From contig OZ241830.1 of assembly GCA_965202585.1 (NCBI GenBank), positions 39,308,001 to 39,372,000 of the forward strand: DNA of 64,000 bases, read 5' to 3'. The notes under the pieces are model-generated. The model saw only the letters and a list, made by a program, of their open reading frames with translations, did no database searches and was not told where the DNA came from. This DNA comes from Thalia democratica. Taxonomy: Eukaryota. The translations under genes and the position numbers were made by a program. Shown in pieces: positions 6,301 to 37,360 of this stretch. The first letter of the stretch is position 1. Each line of letters begins with the position of its first letter.

Positions 6301-9300
6301 TGCTAATAAAAAATTAAGTTTACACAAGTAAAGCAAAAATTGAATAAGTAAAAGTTACTAAAAGAGTCTAGTAAACTTAAAATAACTTATAAGCGAAATT
6401 AGTCGGAAAAACATATTTATAAGATATAGTTAACATTTATTTAATTGTATTACAAAAGTCAGACGAAAATAAAAAAATTTAAAAGCATATAAATTGTTTT
6501 TCAGATTTAATAAATTGTTAAAAATACCAGGGTTCTAAGGGTTCTAATACTAAGGCAGTTATAAAATCTATAAATAAGTAACATTAAAATTAAATACAAA
6601 CACCTAAATATTTTTTTTTTTATAAACTAAAGTATGATAATTTTGTAATTATTATTATGATAACTTATTGTTTTGAAACGTTTAATAATCAGTTAACATT
6701 ATAAAAACATAAGTCTATACAAAACAAACTTTTGTTTCTATAAGTGAATACAATACTCTAAAATAAAAGTTTGAACCTGAACATAACTACTTAAAATTTG
6801 TGGAATTTTAAAAACAAGTTCAAGTGTATTTAATTTGTGTAATTTACAATGAACAAGCGAGTAGGTTAAGTCTATACCAAAAGCATTAAGTGATTTAAAC
6901 CACTTAACAACGATGTCGTGCTTGCAGAAACGTGCAAGAAAGTGCAGATTTCGAGGGACTGCTTCGAACAGTGCAAGCCGGTGACCGGCAGCGAGCTGGA
7001 GTTCGAAGGGGACCTGCTCAACATTTACCAGAGGGAGCAGCTGAAGAGGAGGCTGACCGGCCCGCCGCACGGCAGGAGGACCAACACTCAGGTGAAGTTC
7101 AAGAAGGCCTACACGCTCACCGTCACCCTCAAGAACACCAACACGGTGCGTTTCGAATGTAGAATATTTTCTCGGCTAACAAGTTGTTGGTATTTTCTCC
7201 CAAAGCTTGTACAAAGTTTGAACCAGCACATTAAAAAAGTTTATATACTTCGGCAACTGCAAACTTTTTAGTGCTTGAAAACTGCCGGTAAATCTCAATT
7301 TAGTAGACTGTTGTCTCTTGTCGATGTAATTAAATGTATTGCAGGTGATAGCCGGCATTCAGATAGCGTTGGGAAGCGAAGGCGCGGCGAAATGTCCCAA
7401 CTACATCAGGCTGCACGAGGCGGGCAGGAAGATCTCGTTCAAGAAGAACTTGCTGAAGCGGAGCCGCTGGTTCGACATTCCGCTGACTTTCAGCGAAGTC
7501 GTCGCCGGCAAACATGAAGTCAGTTGGAGAGCTTTGAAAGTTTTAACTAATTTGAGTTTTAAAAAAGTAAACTAAACGTTAAATAAATAGAAAAACGTTT
7601 TGACTGAATTTTTTTCAAACAAATTTCCAGCTTTGTATTTTGATTAAGCTACGTATATTATCTAAATAAATAGTTTTTTTTGTCTAAGTTCATAAAACTT
7701 TTGCTTAGTTTGTTAAATACTTATAAAAATTAATTATTTTTTTTTACTGTTTGTAACAACTGCCACTGATCAAAATATCAAAAATTTAACGTTTTTTTTC
7801 AACAGTTAAAGATAAAAGTTTCAAAATCCAACAGCGACTGGATTGTTGTAGACGGATTAAAAGTTTATTCTAAGTCTGCAGACGCTTACGATCTTAGTGA
7901 AGGTTCATATTGTATTATACATATTATATCAGGTGTTAGATAATCTTAAATTGATATGTACTAAAAAAGATTAGAAAATAGCAAAAGTTTGAATTTTCAA
8001 GTAGGTAAAATAAAACAGACATAGTAGGTTTCCATACTTGTAAATTGAATATTTTGTGTATGTTTAGAGTTTTGGTGCTTAATAAATTAAATTAATGAAT
8101 AAACTTTAAAGCAGGAGAAGGTGAAACTGATATAAAAATTTTGGAAGAAATTGAAAGTTCACATGATGCCAAGTTGAAAAACATTGCATTAAGTCAAGGT
8201 ATTAAAAATTTATTATTTAGAAATATAATTAAATAAATATGGTGCTACAGGAAATATATTTTTGAGTATTTTTAGATTTATGTAATATATTTGACTGTTT
8301 TTCATAAATCCTTTTAGTTTTTAATTTTGTTTTTATGTAAAAAATGTTTTTTTATTTCAAGGTATGAATAAAATATATTGTATAAACAAGTTTTTTTTTA
8401 ATTATTTGCTAATGAGTAATAAATACTGAGAATTTTTTAATATAAAATATAAAGTTTACATTTCAAACAGAACTGTGTAACGAGATAGTTTCTGCATCCA
8501 TGTTCGCCATGGAGCGTTTGATACGCAGCAAAATACAAGTTTGTTACTATTTTTAAACACACTGAAATTAGGATGTTAATTTTTGTACTTTCAAAAGGGC
8601 TCGGAAACTCTCCTGAAAAGTTCATTGCTGGAGACTGGCACGAGCATACTGGCGGAATCCGACGTGGATTTTGTTAGGCGGGACGCGAGAAAACTCGTGT
8701 CAATGATGTTTGAAAACAGACACGATTTTCTTGTTTTCCAGGTGAGTGATAATTTAAAAAAAACTTAAGTTGTGTTTATAGTTATGTACACACAACTGAT
8801 TTGAAAGTGTTACATACATTTTAGTTTGTATATTTCTCCACCGTATTGAACTGTAGAAGCAAAAAAAAACTATCATACACTTTATCAAAAGTTAGTACTT
8901 TTAGTAAAAATTTAAAGTTGCATACAGTTTTGTAAGTTTAATATAAATATTCATCATAAAACCATGTACTGGCTTAAACTTTTTATGTTAGAAAATGTTA
9001 AATACTGAAACGACAGTACTGTTTTATTTCAAACTAAAATATTAATAATATTAAAATAACTTAATTCAAACTTACATATTAAATTACGCTTTTCAAGTGT
9101 ATGCTTTTATTCAATTTAAAGTAAAATATTTATTAAAATTGACTGAATTTGTTAAACTAAATTTGGTTCAAAGTATTTAGTCTAGCTTAATGTTTACTTT
9201 ATAATAACAATAAAAGAACTGTGTTAATAAACGTGTTTTGTGCTGTTTTAAGGACTCCATGGTGATGAAGCGAGCCTTCATGACATTCCACGACGAAGGT

Positions 9301-12300
9301 TTGAACGTTGAAACATTCCAGAGGACGCTGCTTTACGTGTGGCACATCGCAACCAACAGGCCGCAAAACGTGTCGCCTCCCACTAGTGGTGGTGCTGATG
9401 ACATGGTTTGTTTATTAAGTTGAAAGTTACTCGATTGCCTGCATTTTTTCAACGATTAAAACATAATTTTTTAGGACAATCTCAGCTGGGATAAGATCAG
9501 TGTTCAAATGCCGATAAAGTCCTCTAACAGTCTCGTTTGTGTTTCAGATAAGTATGTTTGATAATCTTCATAACATTTTCAAAATAAAAGTAGCAAGGCT
9601 TAGTTATAAATAAATGTTGTAACTGTATCAAATGAAAAAGTTAGTCTGTATAATTTTAACAGTTACCCCAGTATTTGTATGTTTCAAATTTTGTCGTATA
9701 ATCTAGAGACCTCAATTAATCAATAGTATTAACTTTAAAACTAATCCAGGTTTCTCAGTAAGCTTATTATAGAGCTGATGGAACGTCTATGGAAATTTTT
9801 GGATGAAAAACCCCGACACAGAATATTAAGTCCTTCTTGCGTTCCTGAATTAACTCAAATTGATATTACAATTCGTGTCATTGTTGACATTCTGCATTCA
9901 ATAACAGGTTACACAAGAACAAAACTATGATATTTTCTAATAGTTTTGGTTTAATGTGGACGGTTTAATGTTAAGAGTTTTTTTTTAAACCTTAAATATG
10001 TTTAGGTTCTAAATTATTTTGTACTTGATTGTATATTATAATAATTTAAAAAAATATTTTCAGAAAAAAAAACCAATGTTTTTAACATACCTAAAATAAA
10101 AAATGTGTCTAAATTAACTTGTTTATATTATTATTATTATTATTATTGTAAGTTTATTGTCATACGAAGGACCCAGGCATCAAAACCTAGGCCACTTATA
10201 CAGAAAGACATACAACAAAAAGACAAAAATAAACCAAAATTTTACATTAAAAATGAAAAAAAACTGAGTTTAACTAATTGAAGTTAAAAATTAACATAAA
10301 AAACACAAAAATTATAACACAAAATTTATAATTCCGGTGCTTCCGAAAAGAGAACAACAATATCCCACTTCAACTTCACCCGAACAAATGGTTTCACTCC
10401 AAAACTGGTTTCACTTTCATTCGAACAACTGGCTTCACATTATTTGAACAACTGGTTCAGCCTTCATTTGAGTTACTGGTTTAACTTTTATCCATACAAC
10501 TTGTTTGACTTTTATTCGTATAACTAGAACCGCTTTTATCTGAACAACGTGTTTCACTTTTGTTAGGAGAGCCTGCTTCATATTTACTATCAAATCTTTA
10601 ATACTCAGATAACTCAGCGTTTGTTGGACTTTCGTAGTAGCTGATAAATGTTGAGAACACTGACTATAAACAAAACTTGAAAACCCAAGGCCCCAAGCAC
10701 TTTAACAGGCCAATTAACTATGTATTAAGGAACAGGTTTTGTTATACACAGAGGAAAGGCGCCGCTAATAAAATAAAGCTATAGACTAAACCAAATTAGA
10801 CAAATACAACCAGTGGTTAATAAAGAAATAACAAAAAAAAAATTACTTATGAATTTTGCTGACAAAATATTTATTTAAATCAAACTTTTTTAACCTTAAC
10901 CTAAAATGCTCAACTTTTTTACAAGAAACTAATTCGTTTGGAAGCTTGTTCCATAATTCAACTGAACGATAAAAAAAAGAATTATGCCAAACATTATTAT
11001 TGAAATTATGTCTGCATGTAAATTTTCTGTTGTTACCTTTCAGTAAATAAGTACATTTATGAGGTTCAAAAATAGACTGTAAATTAATTGTAGTTTCACT
11101 ATTAATTAGTTTGAAAAAAGTAATTAAGTCAAACTCAATCCTTCTATACTCTAAAGACTTAATACCAAGTTTTGAGAGTCTATCAAAATAAGATGTGTAT
11201 GAAATGTTGCAACGGTTGAAGACTATTCTTGTATATTTTCTTTGAATGGATTCAAGATGGTTAATATCTTTCTTCAGGTATGGAGACCAAATTGGTGTGT
11301 TGTATTCTAACTTAAGACGAATGTAAACGAGATAATTTTTTTTTAGAATGTTTATATCTGTAGATTTAAAACTCTTTAAAACTTGAAAAGAAATAGTTGA
11401 TGCAATTTGATAAACGTAATTGATATGGTGGTTCCATTTTAGGTTTTCAGCAATAAAAATTCCCATATCTTTAAACACTCAAGTTGAAGGTAACCTTATG
11501 TTGTTTATTCTAAATTCAGAAGTGATACTAGATGTATTTTTTTGAATGTTTAGAACCTGACATTTACTAGGGTTTAAAACTAGTTTTTTTTCTTTTAGCC
11601 AATGATAAATTTTATCCAAAGATTTTTGTAGAATTGTGTTAGAATGGCTAAAAATTTTTGTATCGTCTGCAAAGAGATTTATGTTGCTATCAACATCTAC
11701 TACTTCTAAAGTTATATCATTGATATAAATTATAAATAAAAGTGGGCCAATAACCCCTCCTTGAGGCACTCCACTGAAAACAGGTAAAGACTCTGAAAAA
11801 GTGTTACCAATAACTACTTTTTGGGTTCTGTTTTCAAGAAACTCTTTGAACCAGCTAACTAAACTTTTATGAATTTTGTATTGAGTTAAAGTCTTTATTA
11901 GTTTAAAATGGGATACAGAGTCAAAAGCCTTTTGAATGTCTGTGTAAATAACTTTAGTTGACGTATTGCTTAGAAAAGAAACCAACCATGAGTGTAAGCA
12001 ATTCAACAGTTGATAATTAGATGATCGATTAGGTAAAAAACCAAACTGTTTATGTGAAATTAGCTTATTTAAAAAAAGGTGATCAAGTATTTTTAGAGAA
12101 ATTATATGTTCGAAAATTCTACAAAAACTGCTTGTCAAAGAAATGGGTCTGTAGTTTAAAGGGTTGTATTTACTACCTTTTTTGTGCACTGGTATGACAT
12201 ATGAGACTTTCACTGGTTTGGTACAGAGGATGTAGCTAGTGAACAATTAAAAATTAGTGAAATTGGAAGAATTAGGGAATAAATAGTACGTTTAATAAAA

Positions 12301-15300
12301 TATGAAGAAATGTTTTCAGGCGTTCTGATTATTTTATCTTTTAAATGATTAACATACTTAATTATTTCATCATTGCTTATGAAGAAGTTTTTCATTTCCA
12401 AACACTTTTTACTAACAAGTTAAAAATTTTTGTCATCACAATCTTTAATAAATACCTTTTGAAAGGACCTGTTGAAAAAAGAGGCTTTATCAAGTTCTGA
12501 TATTATTGGAAAATTATTTTCATTAATTAATACAGGTAAAGAAGGTGTTAACTTGAGCTTTAGTTTTATATGTTAGGTTTCATTAGCTGTATATCAAAAA
12601 TACTAGTGTATGTGATTAATATACAATTCTTTTCTCAACAGCCAGCTCAAATGAGATGTGTGAAGAAGTCGCTGAAATTTACCACAAACTGCTGGTGCAT
12701 GAAAACAGCAAAATAAGCTACTCAACCAAGTCGGCGTTGGTGAAGTTGGTCAGCAGGAAAGCTGCGAAAAGCGAAGACGATGACGGCAGTTTGTCGAGAT
12801 CGTCATCTCCAGTTTCCGTGGCTTCCACAAGCATACACGAACAAGTAAGTTGTTTAGAGATTTTGAAAAACTCAACTTAAGATGGATTTAGTAAAAGCAA
12901 AACTTGTGTTGTACCTTGTGTATTTCGAACAGCATTATGAAACAATAGTTGTTTATTATTTATCTGTTTGATAAATATGGATTTCTATTTTTTCAATATA
13001 CAACTAAACTAATTAACTATACTTGACGTCTACAGCAGTCAGCACATCTTGGTAGAGTTAAAACTTTTTAGCGATTTTTTTTGTTTAAAGTATATTATTA
13101 AAAACATTAACGTTTTAAAAATCTTAAAATTCAAATTAATTTATAAAAGTACCATTATTTAGCCAAATTAAATCATGATTAATTTTGGTAAACGAAAATA
13201 TAGAAAACGATTACATAAATATTAACACACAAAGTATGTTTTTCAGATATCCCACATATATAATTGACATTGAATATCATACTAATATTTCAAACTTTTG
13301 TCAGTAAAGTATAAGAAATTATGTATTTGCAAATACAAATAGCGGAGTGCAAACAACAAATTATACTTTAATAACAAGACACGTTAATGTCAATGAGAAC
13401 TAATCTTATCATCTCTAATTGTTTTAGTAATGTATTATGCTATTAAAGAAAAGGAACATTAAAAGACACACTTAAGTTTTTTTCTCAACAAACTCCAAAT
13501 GTTTTCAGCCTTTTGGAGGTTCGCACGTGTCGAGCACGCGCGACACGACAACAGCGACGCTTGGCGGTGACGAGATGAACTTCGACGCGATCGAAGACGA
13601 GGACGACGACGACCTGGAGGATGAAGACGACGACGATGATGATGACGAGGAAATGGAAGACGATTTCCCCGATATCGGTTTCAATTTAGTTTTTTGTTGT
13701 AAACTTTAAAATTTGAGTCGAATTTGTTGAAGTTTTCTATAAATCTGAGTATGCCCTTGTTTTTGTAGGTTTTTACTCAAAGTAAATTATATTAAAAAAC
13801 AATTTTTATCAACTAAACTATTGATTTGTTTCACAGATTGTTGTTCTTTTACCTTGACAGTATTTAAACAATTATGATTTTCACAGAAGAAGCTTCGCTC
13901 AATTCAGAAGAGAGAGAGTTCATCGCAGCAGCAGATCCAATATATTTCCAAGATGGGGTACGTTTAAATGATTGATGTATTTATACACCTATAATTGTAT
14001 GAGTTAAACAAATTAAATTAATTTAATTGTATGAGTTGAACAAATGTTTCAGATACAGGACGAGATCATGCACGATTTCGTGGCGGATTTGGTCGAAGAG
14101 GGCAACAACAACGAAGCTAATCAACCACTTATACAGCAACCAGCTGATAATTACGTTGTGGAGGAAGGTTTGCTTTTTTTTTTAATTAATAACTCACTCT
14201 TAATAAACATATATCTACTTATATTTTTTTGACTATATAAAACCAATATGTTTATACGACCGTTTCGTATATGAGATATCTAAGCCTCATATACTTATCA
14301 GTAAGCTAAAGTTTATTAACAATATTTAACAGAAGTTTATAATTTAAAAATTTTTAAGTATTATGACGTAAAAATAGTAGTAGTAATTCCTTTATTTTCA
14401 TAGCTCAATTGAAGTGTGTGGACTCGTTTAACACACAGAAACATATGTCAGTGTAATAAAGGAAGATTACTGTATAATTTGTTTTTATATATATTCCAGT
14501 GAACTTGTTTCACTAGGATCTTTTGTTAACAAACGCTTAAATTTATATTTAGAATAATTAAATATTAACTCTTTTTTTTTGCAGAACTCATTGACGAAGA
14601 AGAAATGGTAGTTGAAGATTTCACCGATGAAATTGAATATGCAATAAGAATGAGTTTGAGAGAAGAAAACAACCAAGAACAAAACCAGGTATAGTTTCTA
14701 TTGTTAAGAAACTAAGTTTTAATTCTTGACGTATTTGTAAGTTAGTGTTTGATCTTTTAGATCTCAACGAACTGAAAAACTTTTATGGTGTTATTGAGTT
14801 GTTAACCATTTTGAAGTTATGTAATTTAAATAAAAAGTAATTAACATAAGGTTGAGGTGCCAGCTGTGGAAAATTCTGTAGACCAGCAAGAAATTTCGGT
14901 TGAAAATAATAAAACAAACGAAACAACACAAGAAGAAACAACCGAATCAACAACTGCCTCTAGCAAGATCGACGATGATTTGTTGAACAAAATCAGATTC
15001 TCCCTGCTTAGTTGCCTGTTCAAAAAATTGGATGCTGTTGAAAACGTCGGCGGCAAACAAGCTATTCCCTACTTCCAGGTAAGACTGGTTTTTTTTATAT
15101 ATAAGTCAACTAACGTTTACATATTTTCTAAATGTTTTATAACAGGTCATGCTGACTTTAATGGAGTCTTTAGAATTGTCAGATGCAAAGAGCACTGAGC
15201 TGCTTCAGCAAGTAATTGTGGGAATTGTCGAAAAACTCAGAAAAGAAACTGTTGATAGTAATATCACAAATAACAACTCCAAAAGCCAAGTTGGTTTAAT

Positions 15301-18300
15301 ATAAAATATTTTTTTTTTAATTTTCTATTTCTTTTAAACTAATATTAAAAAAAGGTATCCTTACTGATGTGGATTATGATTAATATTTTGGTAACAAACA
15401 AAAAGTCGAAGAAATTGTCTATGGAGACGGTGAATGTCTTAAAATCTCAAGATACTTTGTCGTTATGCTATGATAATCTCAAGTATGTTTCAAGTAGATA
15501 GTTTCAGTATAAATTAACAAAAAAAAAATTAAACAAGAGTTAAGTTCGTTAAGAATAACTTATGTTTTTAAAAACTAAAGTAAAATAAAGCATTTATCTT
15601 TTTCAAACTTAACTGAATAAAAACTAATTTGCAAATTTTATTAAACTTCCATTAAAAGCGTATCGCTTTTGAGCTCTAAGTGAAAAAAAAAACTAACTAA
15701 CACTTTATCTCAGAATCCTGTACGAAAACCACTGGGAGAAAGACGTCAGCGCGAACTCGGCCGACTGTGACGTCATAATGAACATCAACGAAGGGTTTCT
15801 TCGTTCTAGTTCGGAGTTGAGCGAGTCGAACGACATGAAGCCGTTCTTCTACCCGCACCACACCAGGTCGGTGGGAGGGAGGGTGTTCGCTCCTTACGTG
15901 GAGCTCATCACCGAAATGCTCCTTCACAACAGCTACCAGTTGAAACGAGCCTACTGCACCAACTCTGGTTTGTTTTTTTATTTAAAATAATTTGTACTTG
16001 GTGTGTATTTAAACAGTTATTAGTTCCTTGACTAAATTTATAATTAAAATTGATACTTAGTTAGTAATAAAAGATTAAAATTTTTTCTATAAAAAATAAA
16101 GAATAGATAAAATTGGATTGAATCTATTTGCAGATATTTCAAATGTTTACGGAGCAAACTGGAAAGAACTACTTTGTAATTTTATGCTTTTTACTGAAAT
16201 TCCATCTGTTATAAAAAAACCAGTTAGAAAGCTAATTCAATACATCACTGGAAACACTAAAGTAAGTCTGAAAAAGAACTATTTTTGTAAATTCTAAATA
16301 ATTAGCTTTACAGTTTACACCTTAACATACTTTTTGTACTTTGGATGTTCATTGATTAAACATTCATAATAAACATAAAATTAATGCCATAATTTTCTTG
16401 GATAGTTAGTTCACTTGAGGCTGTTAGAATTAAATATATAACACTTTGTTGACTATATGTTTATTAAATATTTTTTCAACAATTTATGTATTCAGGAAAG
16501 TTACCAAGAAACTCGGGACTTGCACCAGATGAGCAAGCGCGTGGAAAAGCTGCAGCGAATAACCGCGTGGTCACCGGACGAGCAGCAAACTCACTCACGC
16601 GTTACCGACATGACGTACGACGACGTCACGACGCTGATAGAGTGCGTCACCAAGCTGCTGGCGGTTGCCAGGGAGCGGCCGCACAACTGGCAGAGGTACT
16701 GCGAGGCGAACCTCGACACCCTCGCCTTCCTCCTCTTCGTCAGCCTTAACCTGGATGAGGTGGTCGCCCACGTTTCCATGGAGCTGCTGCTGGTCGCCAC
16801 GGAGTGTTGCGGGGAGGAGGAGGGGAAGGGGAAGAAGAAGAAGAAGGCGGTGGAAAGGGAGAAGAAGCTGTGCGGTTTCCTGCTGGACGGCATGAGCGAC
16901 GAGGGATTGGAAGATTTCGTTCGTCACTTCCTGCTGCACATGAACTCCTCGAAGTTGAGGTGGAAAGCCCATCAGTTGGCACTCAACATGTTCAGGTGCG
17001 TTAAATAAAGCAAAATATTATTTAGAAACCATAAGCACTTCTTGACTATCTATGTTACTAAATTTTCACAATTGAAACTGAAAGACTGCATGGATCAAGT
17101 GTTTTGTTTTTAGCTTAATTTAGTTGTAAGAGCTCTTGTGGTCGCTATTAAAGTTTTTTTATCTGGAGTTTTTTCATAAAGCAGTCTTTTAACTCTTTAA
17201 GACAGTTATAAAAAGTTTAAGTGAAATGTTAAAGTATAAAATACTAGAATGTTATCATCATTATACCTTTTTACTGTACATAAACTATACATACTTGTTG
17301 ATTTAGAAGAACTGCAAACAAGTCCCGGATGTTGTCTGTAATGTGGAAGTTGTGGCCGGATGTGGTCAGTTTCGGTAAGAAATGCGCTCAATTTGTTGAC
17401 TTGATCGGACATTTCACTCTCAAGTCCAAGTTGTCTGAGGTTCGCTTCAGTTTTATCAATAAGACCCAAAACTATTTTTTATCAATATTAAACTACAGAC
17501 TGATGAGTTGTTTGTTGTTTGAAACCATTTAATTTTTGTATTTTATTGAAAGTGTTGTGTTACAGGAAGAAGCAAGCAAGTATGCCGACAGTGCACTGAA
17601 GATATTTCAAAAAACCAACAAGCAACTGACCATGCATCCAAATGCTATTCTCTACAATCAAATTTCTTGTAAGTTTTTTTCTGTAAAAATTAAATACTTA
17701 AAAAAAAGAGTCCTTTTTTTAAAGCAAATGACAAATTTGTATGTTTTTTAAAATGTTTTCATTACGCATAATTTTTTTACAGTAAAAATCGTCAATCGTA
17801 CTTTTAGGTTAAATTATAAAAACAATTGTTTAAGAATTCCTTATTTTCAGCTTACGTCAAACTGGATGGTTATTACTTGGAACATAATCCGTGTATGGTT
17901 TGTAATCACAAGGAAAATCCTTACACAATTAGCAAGTTCACCAATATGAGAAGCGAAATCAAGTATTCCACAACTCAAATGTTTGCTAAGCTGAAAGCAA
18001 CACAATCCATCAACAAGTGCACCATTAAGCTTAATGATGTTAAGAAAAACAAAATGGTCAGTACCTTAACAAATATTTTAATCTGAATTTTTTTAACATT
18101 TAAAAAATAATTACTGTAATGTACCATACATGCTTTTTTGTTTTAAACATTCAATAAATATCTTGACATTTGTTTTTAATTTCCTTAAAAAATTACCTGA
18201 ACAGTTTGCAGTTTTTAAGATTTATTTTCGAACAGATTAAAACTGCTGTTCTGTACTACAACAACAAAAAAGCAACGGCCATTGTTGATTTGAAAAACAA

Positions 18301-21300
18301 ACCAGCGCTTTGGAACAAGGCTAAAGTATTGAATATACCAAAGGTTTCTGATTGTTGTTTGAAATTTTATAAATCACATGAAATAAACTAAATACTATCC
18401 ATCGTTTTCGATCTTATTGGTTAAAACACCTTTAAATCAACGGGTTAACAGAAAAACAGTTCCAAGTGCAAGGCTACACATTTTTGTCAAAATTTTTAAA
18501 ATTTTACCTCAACAATAAAATAAAAATAAAATTAAAGAAGCAAAGTAACATTTATGAATTATACCAATTCGTGTTTAGGGCGAAGACAACATAACATTTG
18601 ACTTACCGTTGCCAGTCGTCGCATCCAACATCATGATAGAGTTCAGCAGATTTTACCAGAGCATTGCAAACACCAATGAAACACTGCAATGTCCCAGATG
18701 TAGTGCTTCTGTCAATGTTTGTATTTTTATTTTTTTGCCGGGACAATTTACTCATGGTATGGGTATAAACAAATTAAAAAAAAAATGTTCTTTTGTTGAT
18801 CACTCCTTCTTATAACATTTATTGTAATGTGCAGAATTTATATTTAATGACGTTTTGTATTCTTAAACTATTGACTTTCAAACTTCAACTTTTCTTCTTT
18901 TCCATCGAAGTGGTACAAACAGGCGAACCCGGGAATATGCGGGAACTGCGGCGAGAACGTGTTCCAGTGCCACAAGTGCCGGAGCATCAACTACGACGAG
19001 AAGGATCCCTTCCTGTGCAACATGTGCGGCTACTCCAAATACGCCAAGTTCGACATCTCCTTCACCTCCAGGCAGTGTTGCGCTGTTGATGCAGTTGGTT
19101 GGTACCAGTTGAAAAAATATTGTTTCATTTAATTATTCTGATGCTTGCATTATTTTCGTGCATAAAATTTTTGTGTTGTAAAACTAATTAACCCATATGT
19201 CTACACATGGAAATATAAATATATATACAAACAATTACCGAGATAATAGAGTTAAAAAAAAAACAGACGATGAAGAGGGTAGGAAGAAAATCAGTGAAAA
19301 CATCAGTTCGTTGATAACGAAAGCAGATGAAACTTACAAACAGCTGTCTCAAGTCAAACCAGACCTTCAAAGTTTGATCACCAACGTACGCTAGTTGCAA
19401 TTAGTGTATTTACATTTACGTAGACCACTGAAATTTTCTCTTCAAAACTTTTTTTAATTTTTTTAAAGTAAAAGTATGCTTTTACTACAGTGCAATTTTA
19501 TTTGTTACAATACGACAAATAAGTTTTCCACTGGTGTTTGTTGTAATTCTAAAAAGTAACTTAAAGCCCAAACATATGTTAAATAGCATGCAGCTTACAT
19601 TATGCTTTTACTTCTACAAGATATCTTCAAACAAGGCAAGCAAGCAACCCGTTGGAATTTACAATACAAACCAAAAAGCAGCCATCAATAGAAGAACTTT
19701 TGCTCAGGCTGCCCACAACAAGAACCAGCCTACAGTTGACAGTAAAGCTGTTGTTAATGGCAATATTCAACAACTTGCCACCAAGTATTGCCAGGTGAAA
19801 TTTTTTTGTAGACTGTTTTTTGATACTACTTAAAATTAATGAGTTAATTCTTTCATTTCAATTACAAGTGAAAAGTTGTATCTTAGTGAAATAGTTATAT
19901 TAAACTAACTTTGTGCTTGTGTAAACTTTTAAAAACAAGACCTTTAACGAAACAAAAGCTTATACTTCATTATAGAACTTTCATAAAAAAGTATAATGTT
20001 ATAATTAACTAAATATAATTTTTGTAACTTACTTTTTTTTTTATCCTTAGGAGTGTAAAAATTTGTTCAATGAACTGGCAAACACAGTTCAGACTGTTCT
20101 TGTGTCTAGAAGTACCTTGATGGAATACGACAGAAAACACAAATTCAAGTTGAGCGGACAACAACAAAGCTCACAAGTAATTTATACAGTATTTAAACAA
20201 TTTTTTTAGGATCTTAGTAAAATTTAATTTTTAGTATAAGATAATTAAACACAAGCAATCAAACTAATTGATTTTTTTTTCTAAAAGAATTTTTTTCTTT
20301 TCTTTTAAAAATTTTGAAAACCAAAAATTAATAGTTTTATTACAGTTCTCGTTAAAATAGTTTGAAATTTTTTTAAGTTTTAATAGTAATCAAAATCAAA
20401 CTAAATAATTACACTGTCATCATTTCTATTAACAGGCGCAGAAATCATCAATGACTTGTTCTCAGTCGTCCACTGATTGCTTCGGTTGCATTGCGGCTGT
20501 TTATCGCCAGTCGGTAACTTTGTTGAGAGTGCTTTCAGTTGACAACTTTGCCAGGTGCCACATGATCAACAAGGGTATCATCGCTCTGCTGCTCACTAAA
20601 AACCCCAACAACAGCGATAGCACTGTTAAAAAGGTTGCTTGTAATATAAGAGACGTGTTAATGAAAAATTGAATAATAAAATTTTGTATAGTTGTTTAAA
20701 ATCGATAAAATGTGAACTGCATTATTGGGAAAATGAATATCTGTAAAGATTTTTTTAAACCAATAGAAAATATCGACAAAGATCTCTTTTTTTATATATT
20801 TTTTAGTTGTAAAAGTTATAATAATGCTCAAGTTTCAAATTAATTAATTAAAAGGTGCACGAGCTGGTGGGCGAGCTGTGCCGGGGAAGCGTGGTGGCGA
20901 CCAACCAGCTGAATAAGGCGGTGCAAACGAGGATCAACGACTCGATCGCCCATCACCAGGTGGCGGGCACCAACCTGCCGCCGGACGAAGTTTCAAACGA
21001 AGTTCGGCTACTCGAGTACGTCGTGGAAAACGTGAAAGACGAATTGTGGCAAACGAGGCTTCGCGCAGGTAAGCTTTCTACATTTTAACTGGTTGTTATT
21101 CATAAATACTTTTTTAAATGGTTTAGCTTGAACACAATGTTATTTAACAAAACGGTCTTGTTTTTGACAATCTAATTTTTTACAGTCACTCATCTTTTCC
21201 AATCCACGCTTCAAATGGAAAAAGCGTCTGTAATTGACAACGTCACCTTACCTTGTTTGAACATTCTCAAAAAAATGGTAAACAAGTTGAAGTTAAATCA

Positions 21301-24300
21301 AAGTTTATAAATCTTAAATACTGTGAAGACTTGGTTAGCAAATGTAAAAAATTAAAGAGTCTTATAATTTAGTTATATTTTTTATAATCGATCAGACAAC
21401 AGTGTCGGAATCAAATCAGCAGCAGCATGTTGGTAAGAACTGTCCAGTTGACTGCAACAAATGGATGCAAGGTGACAAAAATCACGATTACAACAAGTGG
21501 AAGAAGTCTCTCGATATTCAGAAAGGTACGGACAAACCTCGCTCAAGTTTATCCGTATAATAATGCATAGTTTTAGATAAACGTACGTTCCAATGACTAT
21601 TTTATTAAAAGTTAATTGTTTGGGAGTGTTTGTAGAGTTGAAGATTCAATTATAAATTAAGTTAGTCCAGTGTGTTGAAGTTTAAAAGTTAATACGTAGC
21701 TTAATGTTTGTTTGTCATCCAAAAAGATTATATGAACTGAAAGTTTTTATTTTTATTTTGTTACAATACGTTCAGCAACAAAATTTTATTCAAGTTTTTT
21801 GTAACTTGCAGTATTTTTTAAGTTATTTAACTAACTATTTAACAGCTAATGTTTCTGCCACTAAAAACGCTGAAGAGATGGATGATGAAAAAACAAGAAC
21901 TTATTATTTGCAGCAGAAATACATTACCAAGTGGAAGAACTTTGTAAAACAAGACAAGGTTGACGCTTAATTTATTAAAAATGCAATCATAATATGTTTA
22001 ATTTTAAGAAGTAGCAAAAAAAATTCAATACATTTTAAGGAGGTAATATATCTGAGCTTGACTTTGCAGGTAAAGAATGTGAAGGAAAACAGAGAAGTTT
22101 CGATGTTGAAATCTCTTCTGTTCAGTTCATCTAGTCAGTCGATGAGACAAGTAGCTTGCTCGCTCATAACTACTCTATCAGCACCATCGTCCAAACAACA
22201 TCAATGGCTTGATACCTTATCAAGGTTTGTTTTTGTAAAGTTAAATAAACCAATAAGTATTTTAAAGTGTTCATAGAGCTTTTGAGCAAACTTTTAAGCA
22301 ATTATAAACATATAACCTAATGATGTTTAAAATCATATGTAATGTAAATCTCTAACAGCATATTAATTTTCAGTTACTTGTGCGAAATGAGCAAATCTGA
22401 AAGTACAGCTTATGAATTTATATCGCTCTTCAGTAGTCTTATCCAATCCAAAGAGTCTAAGGTTATATTATGATTTTTCATGTTTTGTTAGTCTTCTTTT
22501 TTAGAAGTTATTGAGTATCTTATAAATTTTAAACGTTTATTAAACTTTTTTTTTAATTAAAATTAAATATATTTGAAATATTTAGGTGTACCTAGTCGCT
22601 CATGGGCTGCTTGCGCCAATTGCCGGTTTTATTCAGGAAGAAATTAAAAAGTTGTCGAAACTGGAAGAAACCACTATAAATTTGAACCTGCACCAGGGAT
22701 TTGCCCTTCAAGAATATACCAGTTCGTTTATTCTGTTTTATTTTTGTTATAACTAGCACCTAATTTTAATAAATTTATAAGATTGCATGTAATTGTAACT
22801 TAAAATAAACAAACTTGAACTGCAACATCTAGGCTAGTTTACATGGCTTTAAAACATGATCAATTTTCAGCGCTGTTATCTGACTTGGTGGAAATAGTGC
22901 CTGGCAAGCTGGCGAGCGGCGAGAAGAAGCTGCTGGTGAGATGCGTGCTGGACAGCTACTTGAACTTGCGCAAGCTCGTCCTTCAGCGAACCAACATGGT
23001 CGACGATTCGCAGCAGATCATGCTCGAGCTGCTTGAAGACCTCACTACTGGTATGTTCAATAAGATAACAGTATTAAGCGTATTGAAGTTTAGAATAAAC
23101 ATAAAATTATATAAAAAAATCAATTTATCTATTTTTTGCTATTTTGTTTTTTGTATGTTTCTTCAAACTATTTTGTTTGCAGATAGCGAATCAGAGACTC
23201 GTTCGTTTATGGCGTTGTGTATCGAAGCAATCAAGAAACAAGATTTGCAAGATCGTCAGACGCCCCAGTTTATATTTGAACGCCTTGCCAACATCATATA
23301 CCCTGTTGGTTTTGAACATTGTGTTTTATAATCATTTGATGGCTCATGATATTCAACTTAATTCATTTCTGTTATTTTTAGAGCATTTTTACTTAACAGG
23401 TAGTTTATGTCAGAAAAAAACTAATATTATGAGATGAAGTTGACAATTATATTTAACGTAATTTTTATTAATGCATAAAACAAATAATGACAGGAAGAGG
23501 AAGACACAAACGATTTCTTTCTGCACCTTGACAAGGACCCGCTTCAGGAAGAGTTCTTGCAAGGAAGGATGGTCAACAACCCTTACTCCAGTTCCGCACC
23601 GGGACTCGGACCGCTCATGAGAGACGTAAAAAACAAAATTTGCACTGGTTCGTTAAACCTTGTTTATCTTTTGAGATCATTATAAAAATACAATATATTT
23701 GAAATTTTTTTTTTTTTTTTCAGTGAACGATTGTCTGATTTATGAAATAATAAGTTATGATAAATATGATTTTAATTAAATTATGGTATGATAATTAACA
23801 AAAAATACTTAATACAGATTGTGAGTTAGTAGCATTCTTGGAAGACGACACTGGTATGGAGTTGCTTGTTTGCAATAAAATAGTCTCCTTGGATCTTCCA
23901 GTCAGAGATGTTTGGAAGAAAGTATGGCTTGCTCAAAATCCTGATGTTTGTTATTTATAAGCAGTATTTAAAAAATTTACAAGTAGAACTAAGTATATTA
24001 AGAGTAAAAACACTTACTAGAATTTTTATAATGAATTATCATATATACATATATATGTGTTAAGTATTTAACAGGGAGAATTCACGAAATATAATTTAAA
24101 CTAAGGCAATGTGATTGGTATTGATTTAATTATTAGTTGAAATAGATCAACCAAATATAACATGCAGTTTAACAAAACTTTAAATTAATTGATTGTGTAA
24201 CGATTAGGACGGAGGCGCGATGCACGTGACGTACAGGATGCGCGGTTTGATGGGCGAAGCGACCGAAGACATGGTGAACGAACTGACCAATGAGAGCGAA

Positions 24301-27300
24301 GAAGGCGAGGACGACGAGCAGAAGTACAAGCTGGCTTCTGTGCTGAGTCAATGCGACGGTATTGAGGTTTGATATGTTTGTTAAAAATATTGATTAATAA
24401 AACACCATGATCAAAAACAAGTTGAAATTTTACTCGATGATAAGTTGGGTTTTGTATGAAAAAACGTATGAAGATAAAATTTATTGTAGCTATCTACAAC
24501 CGTTGTGTCAAACAAATTGATAGTTGGCTGCAAATTTTGTTGTTCTGCTTCTTATTCATGTAATACATTCTATCTCGTCATTTTGTACTTCGACCTTAAT
24601 AAGTGTAGCAAAAAATTTAACACTTACAAACTTGCAAAAACTAATTTTATTGTAATAATAGGTTGTTTTTCACATTTATATCAAAAACTTGATTACTTGT
24701 GACACTAAAACAATTTGTAAACTTTTGAAAAAATAAATCTAAATTGATAAATCACTAGATTGTAGTACATAAACATAAAGTGTTTTTAAAGTTTTTATGA
24801 ACTACCTTGTGAGCAAATACTACTGTTTTATGACTAAGTTTGTTTTTTGTTTTGTGTGTTTTTTCTTAAACTATTTAACATGAGTAATTTTGTTTTTAAT
24901 ATAAATTCATACATACAAGTTTTACAACTAATAGCTTAAATACATTTTAAGTATACTCAAACAATTATAAAGCAATAATTAAAACATTACTTTTATCTTT
25001 TTACTTCTTTTCCATCATTTTTATTCACATATTTGTCAAAATCAATGAAAAATTATTATTATAGTTAGTATACTTAGTAATGCTGAGTTGTGCTAAAAGT
25101 TTATTCTATAGTTTCAGTGTTACATGTATGCTTTTTTCAATTATAAACATGTAATTAAATTGATTATTGAGCTTAAATTCGTCAATTTATAATTCAGAGT
25201 TCTGTCCTAACTGTTCTTTTTTGGTATAACAATTTTATTTTCCAACTCATATGAAAAATTTGTAATACATGTAATTATCAATAGTTTACAAAAGCCATTG
25301 CAACCGATAATACGTGTTAAAAAACAAATAAAGTTTTATTCAAAACGAACAGGTGACGCTGAAACGGCTGGAATCGGTGAAGAACGTGGTTCACGACAAA
25401 CCGCTGATGAAAGTGATACTGAAGCTTCTTTCTTACGTGGTGAAAGTCAAGTGCAACCGCCAGTACTTGTGCGCTCGACCCAAACTCAACACATTGAACG
25501 TGCTGCTCGGCAGCTTGCTGCTTGTTAGTTGTTTGCTTTTTTATTAAAACTTTTTTTTTATAGACTTTTAATTTTTACTATTTGGTGTAGTTGGTTTTCA
25601 ATGTTATGAGATTAAGATTTAAACAAAAACACAGAAGTCTTTGCTGGTAACAAAAAGTTTTTTTTTTGATAAGCATATTGCAGAATACAGGATTGCCAAA
25701 AATTTCGGAATCTTTGAAATGCAAAGATGTTTACAATTTCGTATGTAAAAAAGCTTGGAAAAGCGTAGATCTTCGAACAAAAGTCTCTAAAACCTGAAGA
25801 GACTTGGAATTTTAAAAAGATTTTAAATGTAAAATGATAAATTTTTGACTAGGCATAACAAATCTTTTATATACAATAAACTGTTTTGGTATCGTTTAGA
25901 ATTTTATTTACTTTTCCATATTTTCTGTATCTTTTCCATATTTGATAATTATTTTATGAAAGTTTTTTACGTTGAAATTAGTTTTTTACTGAAAATGTAC
26001 AAAAACACTTGAACTTTAAAAAACCTGGAAATATTTTTCTAAAAACCATCGGCAACCCTGAGCATATAAATTAAATAACAATTTAATTAGTAGTTTTTAT
26101 TTTAAACAAGCAGTTGTCGGGACTTTTGTAATTTTTTGGTGACAATGTTTTTCTTTAATCCGAAGGGATTGGAAGCCGAAGAGGATGGAGTGGAGGTTGT
26201 AGAGGAAATAGTTGAAATAATGTGGCAGATATTGCACGAAGCCGCCGAAATTTCAGATGAAAACGAATCGAAATCCGTTCTCACCGGCGACAAAGACAGG
26301 CTCACAACTCTGCTGCCCAAGGTTTGCCACAATGATAGTTTTTTCGAGATATAAGTTACGTTGGTAAATTACTTTTTTTTTAAATAACGTGATATGTTTT
26401 TATGTAGTTTATTAACGTAAATCTAGTAATTACCATAATAAAAATCAAATAGTTTGTAGGTAGTTTAAGAACATTGCATCACAAAATTCCAGTTTACTTA
26501 ACACAATTTGTATATTTAGAATACGTTTTATAGATTGAAAGTGAGTTTGTGCAAAAACATTCATCTGTGTTGAAAGGAATATTGAAAATAATTCCGTTCC
26601 TGTCATTTGGCGACGTTGAAATCATGCAGATGCTAATCAACCATTTCATAACCTCATTGGACTTTGAAAGGTTGAACTTGTTAAACAGTTTGATATATGT
26701 TCATGATACTTTGTTTAAAATGAGACATGTTACGACCATTTTAGTTAAATTTTGTTGTATTACTATAGGATAAGTTTCGTAGATAAAACTTTTTATGATG
26801 ATTTAGATAAACTAATGTATGAAATGTACTCAGGTACGATGCGATGGAGAGTGACAGTTGCAAGCAGACGACTTTGTATTTGAACTGCTTCTGCGACATT
26901 GTGGCGGGAATTCAGGTGAACTCGGCCAACGGGGATCAACTGAAAGACGTCATAATACAAAACAATATCGTCGCCGACGCGCTGCAGTACGTACAACGGC
27001 ACACTCCCGATCACAAGAAGTAATAATTGTTTTTGTGTGGATCTATTGATTTTATTAGCTGATCAATATTAGTATTTTAGATACAGTTGTGTGAATAAAT
27101 CTTAAAAACACGATATTTTTACACTACTAAAAGTTTTTTTAATGATTTGTTCCATACTCATCATAACATTGACTTTCAGTTACGACTCAGATGATTGGAA
27201 GGAGTTCACTCAACGTAGGGGAATCCCAATTTGTTTGAAAATGCTGACGGGTTTGTGCCACGAACACGAAAAAACCCAGCTGCTTTTCCGCGACCACGTT

Positions 27301-30300
27301 CGCAAGCTCCACTTCATTGAACAAGTCAGTTGCTGTTTGTTAAATAGATGTTAAGGTGATGCTTTTTTAAGTATATATGCAGATATTTTTTGCTTATAAT
27401 TTTGATTTGTAAAATGGTGTTCTTGTTTTTAGTTTACTCAATTTAAACTAATGTTTGCCACAAAGAAAGACTTTCTCACAAAACCTGGCCCAAAACCACG
27501 ATTTTTTAAACAAAATTTAGATCTTAAACTTTATAGGTTGCCCATGCAACGAATAAAATTTTTACAAATAAAACCATTTTATAGTAAACATTTGTGTTCA
27601 CGCATCATTTTTTTTAGATTTCATCAGAAGAAGGAATCGGAACTCACGCCGAGAATGTTCTCGAAAAACTAATGGACCACCCGGATGTTGAAAAATTAAT
27701 CAAAAAGGTATTTTGCTCGTTATTTGCAAAGTTAAACTCGACTGTATAAAATAATGTGTTACAGGCAAGACGCGAGACTCGCATGGAAAAGAGGAAGAAA
27801 GCGATGGCAAAACGCAAGAAGGAAATGGATGCTCTGAATACTGTGAAAAGTGTGAGTTTTAAATGTTGCATATACTTTATATATGTACCACAAACGCTTT
27901 TTATCATGATGAATTTCACAGACATTTTCTCAATCCGCCCTGCTTCAAAAGATGTCTCAGATGAAAGAAGAAACTGGGCTCACGTGCATCATTTGCAGGG
28001 AAGGGTATCAATGCGAACCTAAAAAAGTTTGTCTTACTACATGTCAATATTTTGAAGACATTTTTCAATTTGAAACATTTGTTAACTCAAATAAATTTTG
28101 ATCAACTATCAACATCACTGTAATGAAAATTTAATCTCATTATGTTACTTATTATCATAGTTAAATAAAAAAAAATTAAGTAGATTTATTACGACATTTA
28201 TTTTATTCTACAATGTCGCTTTTTAGATGCGAAAATAACTAAATACAATTTCAAATGCACAATGTATTTTACAGGTGTTGGGAATATACACGTTTACGAA
28301 GCGGTGCGTTTTGGAAGAGCACGAAAACAAGACTCAAGGCAGAAAGAGCCAGGGATACTCGACAGTGTCGCACTTCAACGTCATTCATTTCGACTGTCAC
28401 ACTGCTGCTGTGAGTAAAAATAAAAGTAGTTTTTGTATATTTCCAGGACATTAGTATGGAAAGTTTTAGTGCAACTTCTATTAATAGTATTGTATTGATT
28501 CTTGTTAGTGCTGTCGCTAGATAGTAAGTTATTTGTTGTTTTTTCTTGTTGTATACGCCAGCATGAACACCAGGTTCGCAGTCAGAGGGGTCGTGAGGAG
28601 TGGGAATCCGCCACCCTGCAGAACACCAACACCAAATGCAACGGCCTTCTGCCCATGTGGGGACCGCAAGTCACCGAGTCCGCGTACGCCGCTTGTCTTG
28701 CCAGGTTACTATTAGTTTTATAACAACCAAAAGAATAAATAAACTAAGTTTTTGATCATTCCATAGCTAAATTTTACTTCTATTTTCAAAGGCACATTGT
28801 TAGTAGGATTGTCTTTAGGATAAAATGGCACTAAGCCAACTATTGAATAGCAAGCTTTTGTTAATATATAATTTTTACATAATATAATTTTTAGTTCTAT
28901 AACAACCATAAGAACAAATAAACTAAGTTTTTAATCATTCCATAGCTAAATTTTACTTCTATTTTCAAAGGCACATTGTTAGTAGGATTGTCTTTAGGAT
29001 AAAGTAGCACTTGACCTAAGCTAACTGTTAACTTACACAATCTAATTACATAATTTTCAAAGGCACAACACGTTCCTGCAAGAAGCGACGATGATGAACC
29101 GGGACCCGGACTTCCGCCTCGTCATGCACGACGTCAAGGCGCTGCTGTGGAAGTTCTCGCGCGACTCGTCGCTGAGCGAGGGGTGCGGGGGCGGGGGGAA
29201 GGAGTCGAACGTGCAGCTGGTCCCCCACCTCCTCTTCACCGCCCTGTACGTCGTCAACACGTAAGTTTCCTACAAGTTTGCTTGTTTCAAATTATGGGAC
29301 ACGATCGAAATCCACCCAGTCGAACTCGAGAACCGCTTACCGATAAGGGGTAACAGAGATAGTGCAAAACAAATAAAAAGTAAATAAAAAAATGCAAAAA
29401 ATATATAAATTAATAAATAAGGAAAATATTTAAAAAAAATGGGTGGATTTTGAACGCGGGTGGATTTTGAATAAAGTATACGTTTCGCGTTTTGTTGGAA
29501 AACATTGCAATGGTTTTTTTTCAACTTGAGAACTGTAGAGTTGACAGTTTTTTAAATTGTCAGTTTAATATTCAAATAGAACGCGCGGGCGAGCCAAGGA
29601 AGAAAAATCGTTGAAGGAATATTTCGAAGCGGACCAATCGGACTGGGCGTCGGGTTGCAACGAAGTTGACGGTCCATTGTATTACACCGCTCTCATGTGC
29701 GCGCTTCACGGCAAAAATGAGTGGAAAAACAGAAGGTAGTTGATACACGACTTTGTATCTCTTTACTACCCGTTGTAGTTTGTGATATGATAAGGTTATT
29801 TTATGATACTTATTTCAGATTGGTTTTCTTGAGAAGGTTGATTTTGCTTGCTCATGTGAGAAACAACAAGCAAAATTTGAAGGAAGTGCAGGAATATTCC
29901 GAATATAAACCATTTGTTATGTTTTGGGCGCTGGTTGACACCGTAGTCAACACGACTTTTCAAGTTGGTTATCCATAATTAAAGTTATAAGTTTGAACCA
30001 TATAGATTTTGAAAACCTTTTTTACAATAAAATAGTACGTAGATTTTGTCTTAAAAGTAACATAACCCCGTGTTGAGTTTTTTTAGCTTGGCATACAAAA
30101 TAACTCATGTTTAAAATGTAATATATAAATTAGAATTAAACAAATTTAACTTAACCTTCATCTACAAGTACTTTTAATAATATTTAAAACATGCAGTTTG
30201 CACCAGCTGATGCTAATGGTCAGCAAATTCAGGATTACATTCGTCATAATGACGCCCAACTCAAAATACAAGGAGAAAGTACTCTTGAATTATTTAATGT

Positions 30301-33908: not shown

Positions 33909-34052
33909 CTAAAAATTTGTTTTTATAGAAGGTTTTAAAATTGTAATTTCTAATGAATTATTTCAGTTGTGTAAATAATATTTTTATAGACTTACTAAAC
34001 TACCGAAATAGTTTTGAAAGAATATATAAATTTAGTTAAAGTCAATGTAGAT

Positions 34053-34577
34053 GGGAGCGGGTCAGAATGACACAGCGACAAAATGACACGGTCGTCAAAT
34101 AGACACGGTGCGTCATTTTGGCACAGCGACAAAATGACACGGTGAGTCACCTTGGCACGGTGCGTCAGTTTAGCACGGAGAGTCACTTTGACACGGCGAC
34201 AAAATGACACGGTGCGTCACTTTGGCACAGCGACAAAATGACACGGTGGGTCACTCTGGCACGGTGCGTCACTTTGGCACAGAGGGTCACTTTGACACAG
34301 CGACAAAATGACACGGTGCGTCACTTTGGCACAGAGGGTCACTTTGGCACAGCGACAAAACGACACGGTGCGTCACTTTGACACGGAGGGTCACTTTGGC
34401 ACAGCGACAAAACGACACGGTGCGTCACTTTGGCACGGAGGGTCACTTTGGCACAGCGACAAAACGACACGGTGCGTCACTTTGGCACGGAGGGTCACTT
34501 TGGCACAGCGACAAAACGACACGGTGCGTCACTTTGACACGGAGGGTCACTTTAGCACAGCGACAAAATGACACGGT
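34053..34577 (+). repeat. Minisatellite arm (left inverted repeat of a foldback-like element)
   Basis: Modular repeats of gacacggtgcgtcactttggcac, cggagggtcactttggcac and agcgacaaaat, starting gggagcgggtcagaatgacacagcgacaaaatgacacgg. Confidence 0.95.
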
Positions 34578-36828: not shown

Positions 36829-37360
36829 GTGACGCGACGTGTCATTTTGTCGCTGTGTCAAAGTGACGTATCGTGTCATTTTGTCGCTGTGCCAAAGTGA
36901 CGCACCGTGTCGTTTTGCCGCTGTGCCAAAGTGACCCTCCGTGCCAAAGTGACGCACCGTGTCGTTTTTTCGCTGTGCCAAAGTGACCCTCCGTGCCAAA
37001 GTGACGCACCGTGTCATTTTGTCGCTAGGCCAAAGTGACCCTCCGTGCCAAAGTGACGCACCGTGTCGTTTTGTCGCTGTGTCAAAGTGACCCTCTGTGC
37101 CAAAGTGACGCACCGTGTCATTTTGTCGCTGTACCAAAGTGACGCACCGTGTCATTTTGTCGCCGAGCCAAAGTGACCCTCCGTGCCAAAGTGACGCACC
37201 GTGCCAAGGTGACGCACCGTGTCATTTTGTCGCTGTGCCAAAGTGACGCACTGTGTCATTTTGTCGCCGTGTCAAAGTGACCCTCCGTGTCAAAGTGACG
37301 CACCGTGCCAAAGTGACGCACCGTGTCATTTTGTCGCTGTGTCATTCTGACACCCTCCCC
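36829..37360 (-). repeat. Minisatellite arm (right inverted repeat)
   Basis: Reverse complement of the 34053-34577 array, ending ccgtgtcattttgtcgctgtgtcattctgacaccctcccc. Confidence 0.95.

Follow-up and report, generated by a model that had tools for sequence, protein, structure and literature searches.

The UBR4 gene of Thalia democratica revealed a mosaic of synonymous codon composition in which each exon sets its own proportion of G and C at the third positions of codons (GC3), independently of its neighbors. The gene was analyzed in a stretch of 64,000 nt (assembly GCA_965202585.1, contig OZ241830.1, positions 39,308,001 to 39,372,000 of the forward strand; 29% GC), in the following called the window, whose first 30 kb carry the middle and 3' part of UBR4 on the plus strand. 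The contig extends to at least 73.6 Mb, in an assembly of 802 Mb. Over a curated set of 49 exons, GC3 ranged from 0.18 to 0.97 (chi2 361, 48 degrees of freedom (df), p 2e-49), and the 16 RNA-confirmed exons were heterogeneous on their own (chi2 138, df 15). The introns were AT-rich throughout, as noted in the initial annotation of this stretch, with 24.5% GC.

Identification of the gene and confirmation of its exons

Based on homology, the 166-aa exon at 16496-16995 was aligned to residues 3222-3329 of human UBR4, and tblastn searches with full-length UBR4 proteins of a crinoid, mosquitoes, a mayfly, and a mite yielded about 30 collinear exons in the window. Marine metatranscriptome contigs, 95–97% identical to the window and spliced at GT..AG introns, confirmed 16 consecutive exons (15714-21525), which after concatenation gave an open frame of 932 codons. 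By these spliced contigs, GC-rich and AT-rich exons are joined in one transcript; a single RNA contig consisted of 15707-15967, followed by 128 nt (the size of exon 16134-16261) and 16496-16708. At the DNA level, a contig of a second organism covered 16471-17470, exon plus intron in one piece, and the marine metagenome contig L001 aligned over the GC-rich exon 16496-16995 and both adjoining AT-rich introns with 89.7% identity, displaying the same GC profile across intron, exon, and intron as the window (0.19, 0.62, and 0.28). Close relatives of the window sequence turned up only in marine metagenomes and metatranscriptomes. Because RNA contigs and independent DNA contigs link the GC-rich exons to their AT-rich context, contamination is excluded. 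The mosaic is real, and the chance that it reflects mis-assembly or the co-assembly of a second organism, an objection already raised in the initial annotation, is practically nil.

That annotation had been built on hand counts of GC-ending codons in six exons, all of which proved exact in their frames (66/72, 5/27, 8/42, 137/166, 63/65, and 6/34), and the description of exon 16496-16995 as AT-richer at its ends was borne out. As for the exons themselves, 16134-16261 and 16496-16995 were confirmed by RNA, 6928-7145 and 29063-29260 by homology, and 30197-30298 by weak collinear homology, while neither RNA nor homology support was found for 8115-8198. In the curated set, all exons apart from the 16 supported by RNA are supported by homology and have approximate edges.

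Three dynamic-programming gene models of the window recovered only 11 of the 16 RNA-confirmed exons exactly, because splice signals are weak, and over-extended some exons. An ab initio model trained on the same 16 exons was exact for 11/16 only. The 16 RNA-confirmed donor sites (15967-21525) were weakly conserved, with few GTAAGT, often T or C at +3, and G at +5 as the most constant base. Apparent composition switches inside exons 4569-4849 and 22871-23304 turned out to be errors of the gene models. In the latter case, positions 23051-23182 represent an in-frame, stop-free, AT-rich intron of 132 nt with the ends gtatgt...tttgcag, which is absent from the alignment with the relative L068 (an intron is located at the same place there) and indel-rich in the relative L067; if it is read through, two exons mimic one exon of 434 nt with an internal switch.

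The exon as the unit of composition

Overall GC content amounted to 0.57 in GC-rich exons, 0.38 in AT-rich exons, and 0.245 in introns. Across the UBR4 exons, GC3 formed a broad continuum and not two classes. The two halves of one exon were correlated in GC3 (rho 0.62 for 39 exons, 0.71 for the RNA-confirmed set), while adjacent exons revealed no agreement (rho −0.03 to −0.21; −0.18 over 49 exons), and neither did the end of a UBR4 exon and the start of the next one (rho −0.01). Codon pairs at equal mRNA distance were correlated within an exon (r 0.12–0.15) and uncorrelated across a junction (r about 0.00). With halves agreeing and neighbors uncorrelated, something is indeed set exon by exon, as had been suspected.

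On a larger scale, all 1-kb windows had a GC content of 0.19–0.43, and composition was not shared by exons, introns, and neighbors over kilobases. GC3 was not tied to the GC content of flanking introns either (rho 0.29 and 0.12 with near flanks). An explanation by isochores or regional GC, which the initial annotation had likewise dismissed, is excluded, since GC3 has no link to flanking introns or neighboring exons. All 27 GC islands in the UBR4 stretch (1–30 kb) overlapped model exons, about six of which are known from gene prediction alone; four islands beyond 33 kb were without the third-position GC signature.

Exon length and distance from splice junctions

In UBR4, GC3 increased with exon length (rho 0.58, p 1e-5 for 49 exons; rho 0.70 for the 16 RNA-confirmed ones). 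Of the 31 exons with 148 nt or more, 11 reached a GC3 of at least 0.72, compared with 0 of the 18 shorter ones (Fisher p 0.004), among which the highest value was 0.63 at most. Within RNA-confirmed exons, GC3 was 0.42–0.47 at up to 15 nt from a junction and 0.82–0.86 at more than 90 nt. The shortest introns confirmed in UBR4 measured 117–132 nt; therefore, only longer exons could hold an intron-like stretch. Upstream intron length predicted GC3 weakly (rho 0.35).

Sharp steps at splice junctions and stop codons

At the acceptors of GC-rich exons, overall GC content rose from 0.27 to 0.58 within 10 nt, and at their donors it fell from 0.47 via 0.35 to 0.18 within 20 nt. Beside GC-rich exon ends, GC content at intron positions +7 to +30 was 0.21, and beside AT-rich ends it was 0.19. 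No copies of exon ends were detected in the introns adjoining the UBR4 junctions. Steps were also detected at the stop codons of single-open-reading-frame (single-ORF) kinases with a GC3 of 0.61–0.79, past which GC dropped from 0.45–0.70 to 0.15–0.53 (mean about 0.30) within 40 nt, stayed about 0.05 above controls for about 120 nt, and then reached 0.19. Since the steps lie at splice junctions and also at stop codons, the composition boundary is that of coding versus non-coding sequence, and the codon bias is confined to translated sequence.

Codon usage and amino acid composition

In GC-rich exons, all synonymous families moved to both G and C, including codons that contain CpG (GCG 0.44, CCG 0.74), and A-ending codons were the most avoided (0.05 at four-fold sites). 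Two-fold families were split: pyrimidine-ending ones were 0.85–1.00 C-ending, purine-ending ones only 0.55–0.77 G-ending, an asymmetry that is not expected from strand-symmetric conversion. GC-rich exons had an observed/expected CpG ratio of 1.08, compared with 0.68 for AT-rich exons and 0.72 for introns, and AT-rich exons revealed an excess of TpG plus CpA.

GC contents at first and second codon positions followed GC3 across exons (rho 0.37 and 0.48). A seeding of GC3 by amino acid composition was nevertheless rejected, as the GC content at positions 1 and 2 (GC12) imposed by distant homologues was hardly related to GC3 (rho 0.14), and the chi2 of 361 puts the heterogeneity far outside sampling noise. 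Compared with distant homologues, GC-rich exons were unchanged at positions 1 and 2 (delta GC12 +0.009), and the shift of GC12 from the homologues was correlated with GC3 across exons (rho 0.53). GC-ending codons were not enriched at conserved residues (Akashi test, Mantel-Haenszel odds ratio 0.98, p 0.84). Protein conservation as a driver was rejected as well, since exon conservation does not predict GC3.

Other genes of the genome

In 16 dynein heavy-chain paralogues, 76 exon matches to one conserved domain revealed heterogeneity of GC3 between genes (chi2 290, df 15) and also within genes (chi2 277, df 60). In one of these genes, consecutive exons had GC3 values of 0.65, 0.26, 0.34, 0.81, 0.37, and 0.79. 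Given this within-gene heterogeneity in both the dyneins and UBR4, translational selection acting per transcript is insufficient, as the initial annotation had held. Single-ORF kinases, a sample biased to intronless, tandemly expanded genes, ranged in GC3 from 0.21 to 0.91 with flanks uniform at about 0.23 GC.

Comparison with relatives

In the long contigs of L068 (37% GC, 50–84% protein identity per exon), GC3 was near-uniform (0.44–0.63) at 15 orthologous segments and agreed only weakly with that of the window (rho 0.43, not significant). L035 and L036, which are more distant, too much so to polarize substitutions, possess a compact UBR4 of 42–47% GC without the mosaic and without some of the introns; in L036 (3520-4272) and L035, a single open frame holds the counterparts of exons 16134-16261 and 16496-16995. 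Generally, intron content differs greatly between lineages. The mosaic, which is common to the window and its close relatives, is lineage-specific, since L068, L035, and L036 are without it.

In regard to the close relatives, for which exons of window 15600-21599 were compared with the X6/X7 runs, the metatranscriptome lineage was GC-richer at variable sites, with A or T in the window facing G or C in the relative at 60 sites and the reverse at 16. Differences from the DNA of the second organism were balanced (33 vs 41), and in exon 22871-23050 the window was GC-richer than L067 (11 vs 2). Because close relatives differ directionally, the exon states look out of equilibrium and fast-moving, as far as such unpolarized changes suggest. 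Introns diverged faster than exons and were full of indels. A slower evolution of third positions of GC-rich exons than of introns was seen for one relative (8.4% vs 14%) but not for a second (22% vs 19%) and was dropped as evidence of constraint.

Possible explanations of the mosaic

We tentatively favor, with a probability of about 0.4, selection on the coding mRNA sequence that is set exon by exon and opposes strong AT mutation pressure. Under this reading, AT-biased mutation would set the default, with introns and flanks at about 24% GC and short exons at a GC3 of about 0.4, while a counter-bias would fix G or C only in what ends up as coding sequence of the mature mRNA. The strength of this bias would be set separately for each exon, would also be modulated gene by gene, and would take effect only above an exon length of about 150 nt. 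We infer both that the bias is selection and what is selected for; it is read as acting on the transcript, and not as a process on DNA tracts, because the step falls on splice junctions and stop codons. In its most likely form, selection would be tied to the processing or surveillance of RNA: away from junctions, coding sequence would have to differ from the AT-rich background of introns and transposons, avoiding cryptic splicing, poor export, or silencing, whereas close to a junction, splicing itself would serve to identify the sequence. The favored reading would carry two published ideas to an extreme, namely that splicing rescues the expression of AT-rich mRNAs and buffers AT-rich codon usage (PMC7181179) and that AT-rich, long-exon RNAs are treated as suspect, the unwanted-transcript hypothesis (PMC11865589).

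Several observations weigh against selection on the mRNA. A model based on distance from junctions leaves most of the GC3 variance unaccounted for (residual chi2 292, df 47), exons of near-equal length can be very different (0.97 at 198 nt, 0.47 at 206 nt), and some long single ORFs have a GC3 of only 0.21–0.36. The flanks of GC-rich exons and ORFs are GC-richer by about 0.05 at most, at exons barely significantly, which hints at a component at the DNA level. It is these strong differences between exons of the same length and the small spill into the flanks that hold down our confidence. AT-rich exons have also drifted to AT-rich amino acids (delta GC12 −0.054, p 0.018), although any force resisting AT erosion would give such a drift in AT-rich exons only. 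Finally, splice-site strength did not predict GC3 in 47 UBR4 exons (rho 0.03 for donor matches and −0.13 for the pyrimidine tract, at low power), and with this number of exons, the suggestion of GC as an exon-definition mark that compensates for weak splice signals was rejected. Given how strongly GC3 depends on exon length, however, a link to RNA processing is still conceivable.

A possible, though unlikely, explanation and the main rival is GC-biased gene conversion that is confined to conserved coding DNA, with the indel-rich introns and flanks of a very polymorphic animal blocking heteroduplex formation; GC-rich exons, being less polymorphic, would be converted more often, which would stabilize the exon states. 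Such a process would account for the rise of both G- and C-ending codons in every family, CpG codons and a CpG ratio of 1.08 included, for the length threshold and the autonomy of exons, for GC3 without a link to residue conservation, and for the resistance of GC-rich exons to AT-ward amino acid drift. It is also in line with the faster, indel-rich divergence of introns, the spill of about +0.05 GC, and one-directional differences from close relatives in which the richer lineage varies (60 vs 16 and 11 vs 2), and for plants, introns have been suggested to act as a barrier to conversion tracts (PMC4684703). However, steps of 10 nt or less at junctions appear too sharp for conversion, given 0.21 vs 0.19 GC at intron positions +7 to +30, and a similar step is present at stop codons. 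Moreover, GC3 reaches 0.85–0.97 while adjacent unconstrained DNA has at most 0.38 GC, and pyrimidine- and purine-ending two-fold families behave differently. Very local conversion, one of the processes named in the initial annotation, thus fits poorly. A related reading, distinctly unlikely in our view, is a bistable exon composition, in which conversion between haplotypes of very strong divergence, or with mRNA copies made by reverse transcription, would form heteroduplex only in long conserved coding stretches. GC bias would then lower synonymous diversity and invite more conversion, with introns and non-coding DNA as insulators, and each exon would be a separate evolutionary unit flipping between GC-rich and AT-rich states.

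A bias of mutation or repair linked to chromatin appears improbable. Long exons carrying a positioned nucleosome, or unmethylated like small CpG islands, would lose fewer cytosines, while methylated short exons and introns would decay to AT. The CpG ratios of the three sequence classes, the excess of TpG plus CpA in AT-rich exons, the length threshold near one nucleosome, and the erosion of AT-rich exons at non-synonymous positions too are consistent with this process, and C5 DNA methyltransferase domains are encoded in the genome; the methylation-linked mutation of the initial annotation finds weak support in these domains and in the CpG ratios of 1.08 vs 0.68. Lower loss alone, however, cannot lift GC3 to 0.9 or more when orthologous exons of a relative stay near 0.5, and chromatin marks, with a resolution of about 150 bp, are too coarse for the 10-nt steps at junctions and stop codons. 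Highly improbable, finally, is ordinary translational selection for G- and C-ending codons that is overridden near exon ends by the needs of splicing enhancers, so that short exons would not become GC-rich. The restriction of the effect to coding sequence, the near-fixation of C in pyrimidine-ending two-fold families, the lower GC3 near exon ends, and the gene-level component among dynein and kinase genes agree with it. Yet GC-rich exons keep their richness to the very edge, with an overall GC content of 0.58 over their first 10 nt, heterogeneity is huge within a gene for which high expression is not expected, conserved residues show no enrichment of preferred codons, and GGG, CGG, and CCG codons rise too.

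Comparison with known systems

Differential GC content of exons and introns is said to have been put forward as an architecture of splice recognition by Amit et al. in 2012. The gene studied here resembles it in its low-GC genome, its AT-rich introns, and exons standing out by GC, but the contrast varies five-fold within one gene, does not track splice-site strength, and is least in short exons. Landscapes of GC-biased gene conversion in animals were reportedly described by Galtier et al. in 2018. Similar to these, synonymous sites shift to both G and C and change fast and in a lineage-specific manner. The usual hallmark of such conversion is that GC3 tracks the GC content of flanking non-coding DNA, which is absent here.

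In plants, composition steps delimited by introns were described, with exons GC-richer than the AT-rich introns and introns proposed as barriers (Ressayre et al. 2015, PMC4684703). There, however, gradients are ordered, outer exons being GC-rich and inner ones uniformly GC-poor, whereas internal exons of UBR4 range from 0.18 to 0.97 without correlation between neighbors (adjacent rho −0.18) and with exon length as the main predictor. In mammals, GC-rich synonymous sites likewise matter most where splicing gives no help, i.e., in genes with only one exon and in long exons (Mordstein et al. 2020, PMC7181179; PMC11865589), and constraints by splicing enhancers lie within about 70 nt of exon ends (PMC7181179; PMC11865589). 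In contrast, those shifts are modest and mammal-wide, and GC content at four-fold sites falls with length in single-exon mammalian genes, while GC3 in the window rises steeply with exon length, up to 97% in internal exons. A survey of 38 tunicate genomes found the distribution of gene-level GC3 to be unusually broad in thaliaceans and the genomes of some species to be very AT-rich, with mutation bias, codon selection, and gene conversion named as causes yet to be resolved (PMC13746493). It treats GC3 per gene only and does not describe exon-level mosaicism, a length threshold, or junction-sharp steps. Salp genome papers report G-quadruplex motifs close to genes and do not mention an exon GC3 mosaic, and our literature searches found no description of exon-by-exon GC3 mosaics. 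We regard the mosaic as a new and extreme version of the known effects on exon and intron composition.

Annotated features and further observations

The features of the UBR4 stretch are compiled in Table 1.

Table 1. Exons of UBR4 and one in-frame intron in the window, with GC3 and supporting evidence.
Feature	Position	Strand	GC3	Evidence and remarks
UBR4 exon	1638..1791	+	0.42	homology; edges approximate
UBR4 exon	2055..2214	+	0.74	homology, 75% identity to crinoid UBR4; edges approximate
UBR4 exon	4246..4497	+	0.69	homology; edges approximate
UBR4 exon	6928..7145	+	0.92	66/72 GC-ending codons; homology; flanks 0.30-0.36 GC
UBR4 exon	7345..7539	+	0.74	homology; donor 7518 or 7539
Putative AT-rich exon of the initial annotation	8115..8198	+	0.19	5/27 GC-ending codons; no homology or RNA support found
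UBR4 exon	9750..9907	+	0.25	homology; edges approximate
UBR4 exon	15714..15967	+	0.79	RNA-confirmed
UBR4 exon, between two GC-rich exons	16134..16261	+	0.19	8/42 GC-ending codons; RNA-confirmed in contig with neighbors; homology to L036, E 2e-10
UBR4 exon, AT-richer ends	16496..16995	+	0.83	137/166 GC-ending codons; RNA-confirmed; human UBR4 3222-3329; same architecture in L001
UBR4 exon	17307..17439	+	0.61	RNA-confirmed
UBR4 exon	17566..17668	+	0.41	RNA-confirmed
UBR4 exon, long yet not GC-rich	17851..18056	+	0.47	RNA-confirmed
UBR4 exon	18236..18343	+	0.42	RNA-confirmed
UBR4 exon	18579..18716	+	0.50	RNA-confirmed
UBR4 exon	18923..19097	+	0.83	RNA-confirmed; 78% identity to crinoid UBR4
UBR4 exon	19267..19385	+	0.46	RNA-confirmed
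UBR4 exon	19621..19794	+	0.40	RNA-confirmed
UBR4 exon	20051..20176	+	0.43	RNA-confirmed
UBR4 exon	20436..20633	+	0.58	RNA-confirmed
UBR4 exon	20855..21068	+	0.77	RNA-confirmed
UBR4 exon	21186..21277	+	0.43	RNA-confirmed
UBR4 exon	21396..21525	+	0.51	RNA-confirmed
UBR4 exon	22871..23050	+	0.78	homology; donor CTACTG|gtatgt; intron here in L068
In-frame, stop-free, AT-rich intron, 132 nt	23051..23182	+		absent from L068 alignment; indel-rich in L067; gtatgt...tttgcag
UBR4 exon	23183..23304	+	0.48	82% identity to L068
UBR4 exon	24208..24366	+	0.74	homology; edges approximate
UBR4 exon	25353..25523	+	0.74	homology; edges approximate
UBR4 exon	29063..29260	+	0.97	63/65 GC-ending codons; homology; flanks 0.32-0.42 GC
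Probable UBR4 exon	30197..30298	+	0.18	6/34 GC-ending codons; weak collinear match to mosquito UBR4 5405-5425

Adjoining UBR4, two GC-rich islands of about 600 bp were located at 34028-34638 and 36795-37397 (0.51–0.52 GC), the best ORFs of which had a GC3 of 0.53–0.59; without a strong signature at third positions, they are unlike the islands formed by exons within UBR4. Elsewhere in the genome, dozens of near-identical intronless protein-kinase ORFs were found in tandem arrays (C8:12.3-17.8 Mb and 53.5-53.8 Mb), and sets of kinase paralogues revealed a common GC3 state (e.g., L024-L026 at 0.78–0.79). Three tandem ORFs of about 875 aa, each with a complete C5 cytosine DNA methyltransferase domain, were identified at C1:49968705-49997951, with partial matches elsewhere in the genome.

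The mitochondrial COX1 gene (C1833:8315-9631; L002:1501-2817) harbored 32 AGR codons at conserved glycines and five TGA codons. It reads correctly only with AGA/AGG as glycine and TGA as tryptophan, by which, e.g., FFRHPEVY becomes the universal FFGHPEVY. To our knowledge, no mitochondria other than those of tunicates use this code (table 13); together with the marine occurrence of close relatives, it points to a pelagic tunicate as the most likely source. Several COX1-like copies with many stop codons were also detected in nuclear contigs (C4:56.84-56.95 Mb and C757) and resemble nuclear insertions of mitochondrial DNA.

Implications

Synonymous composition is usually explained per gene, by expression, or per region, by recombination and isochores, whereas here the unit is the single exon. 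This genome therefore offers a natural test case in which selection on RNA and biased gene conversion, the subject of a long-running argument, can be told apart. In practical terms, gene finders trained on a single codon model will overlook AT-rich exons or run through in-frame introns, as at 23051-23182, and published gene-level GC3 statistics for tunicates average over the mosaic. Phylogenomic analyses and those of non-synonymous to synonymous substitution ratios (dN/dS) in such animals face a strong, exon-specific compositional non-stationarity.

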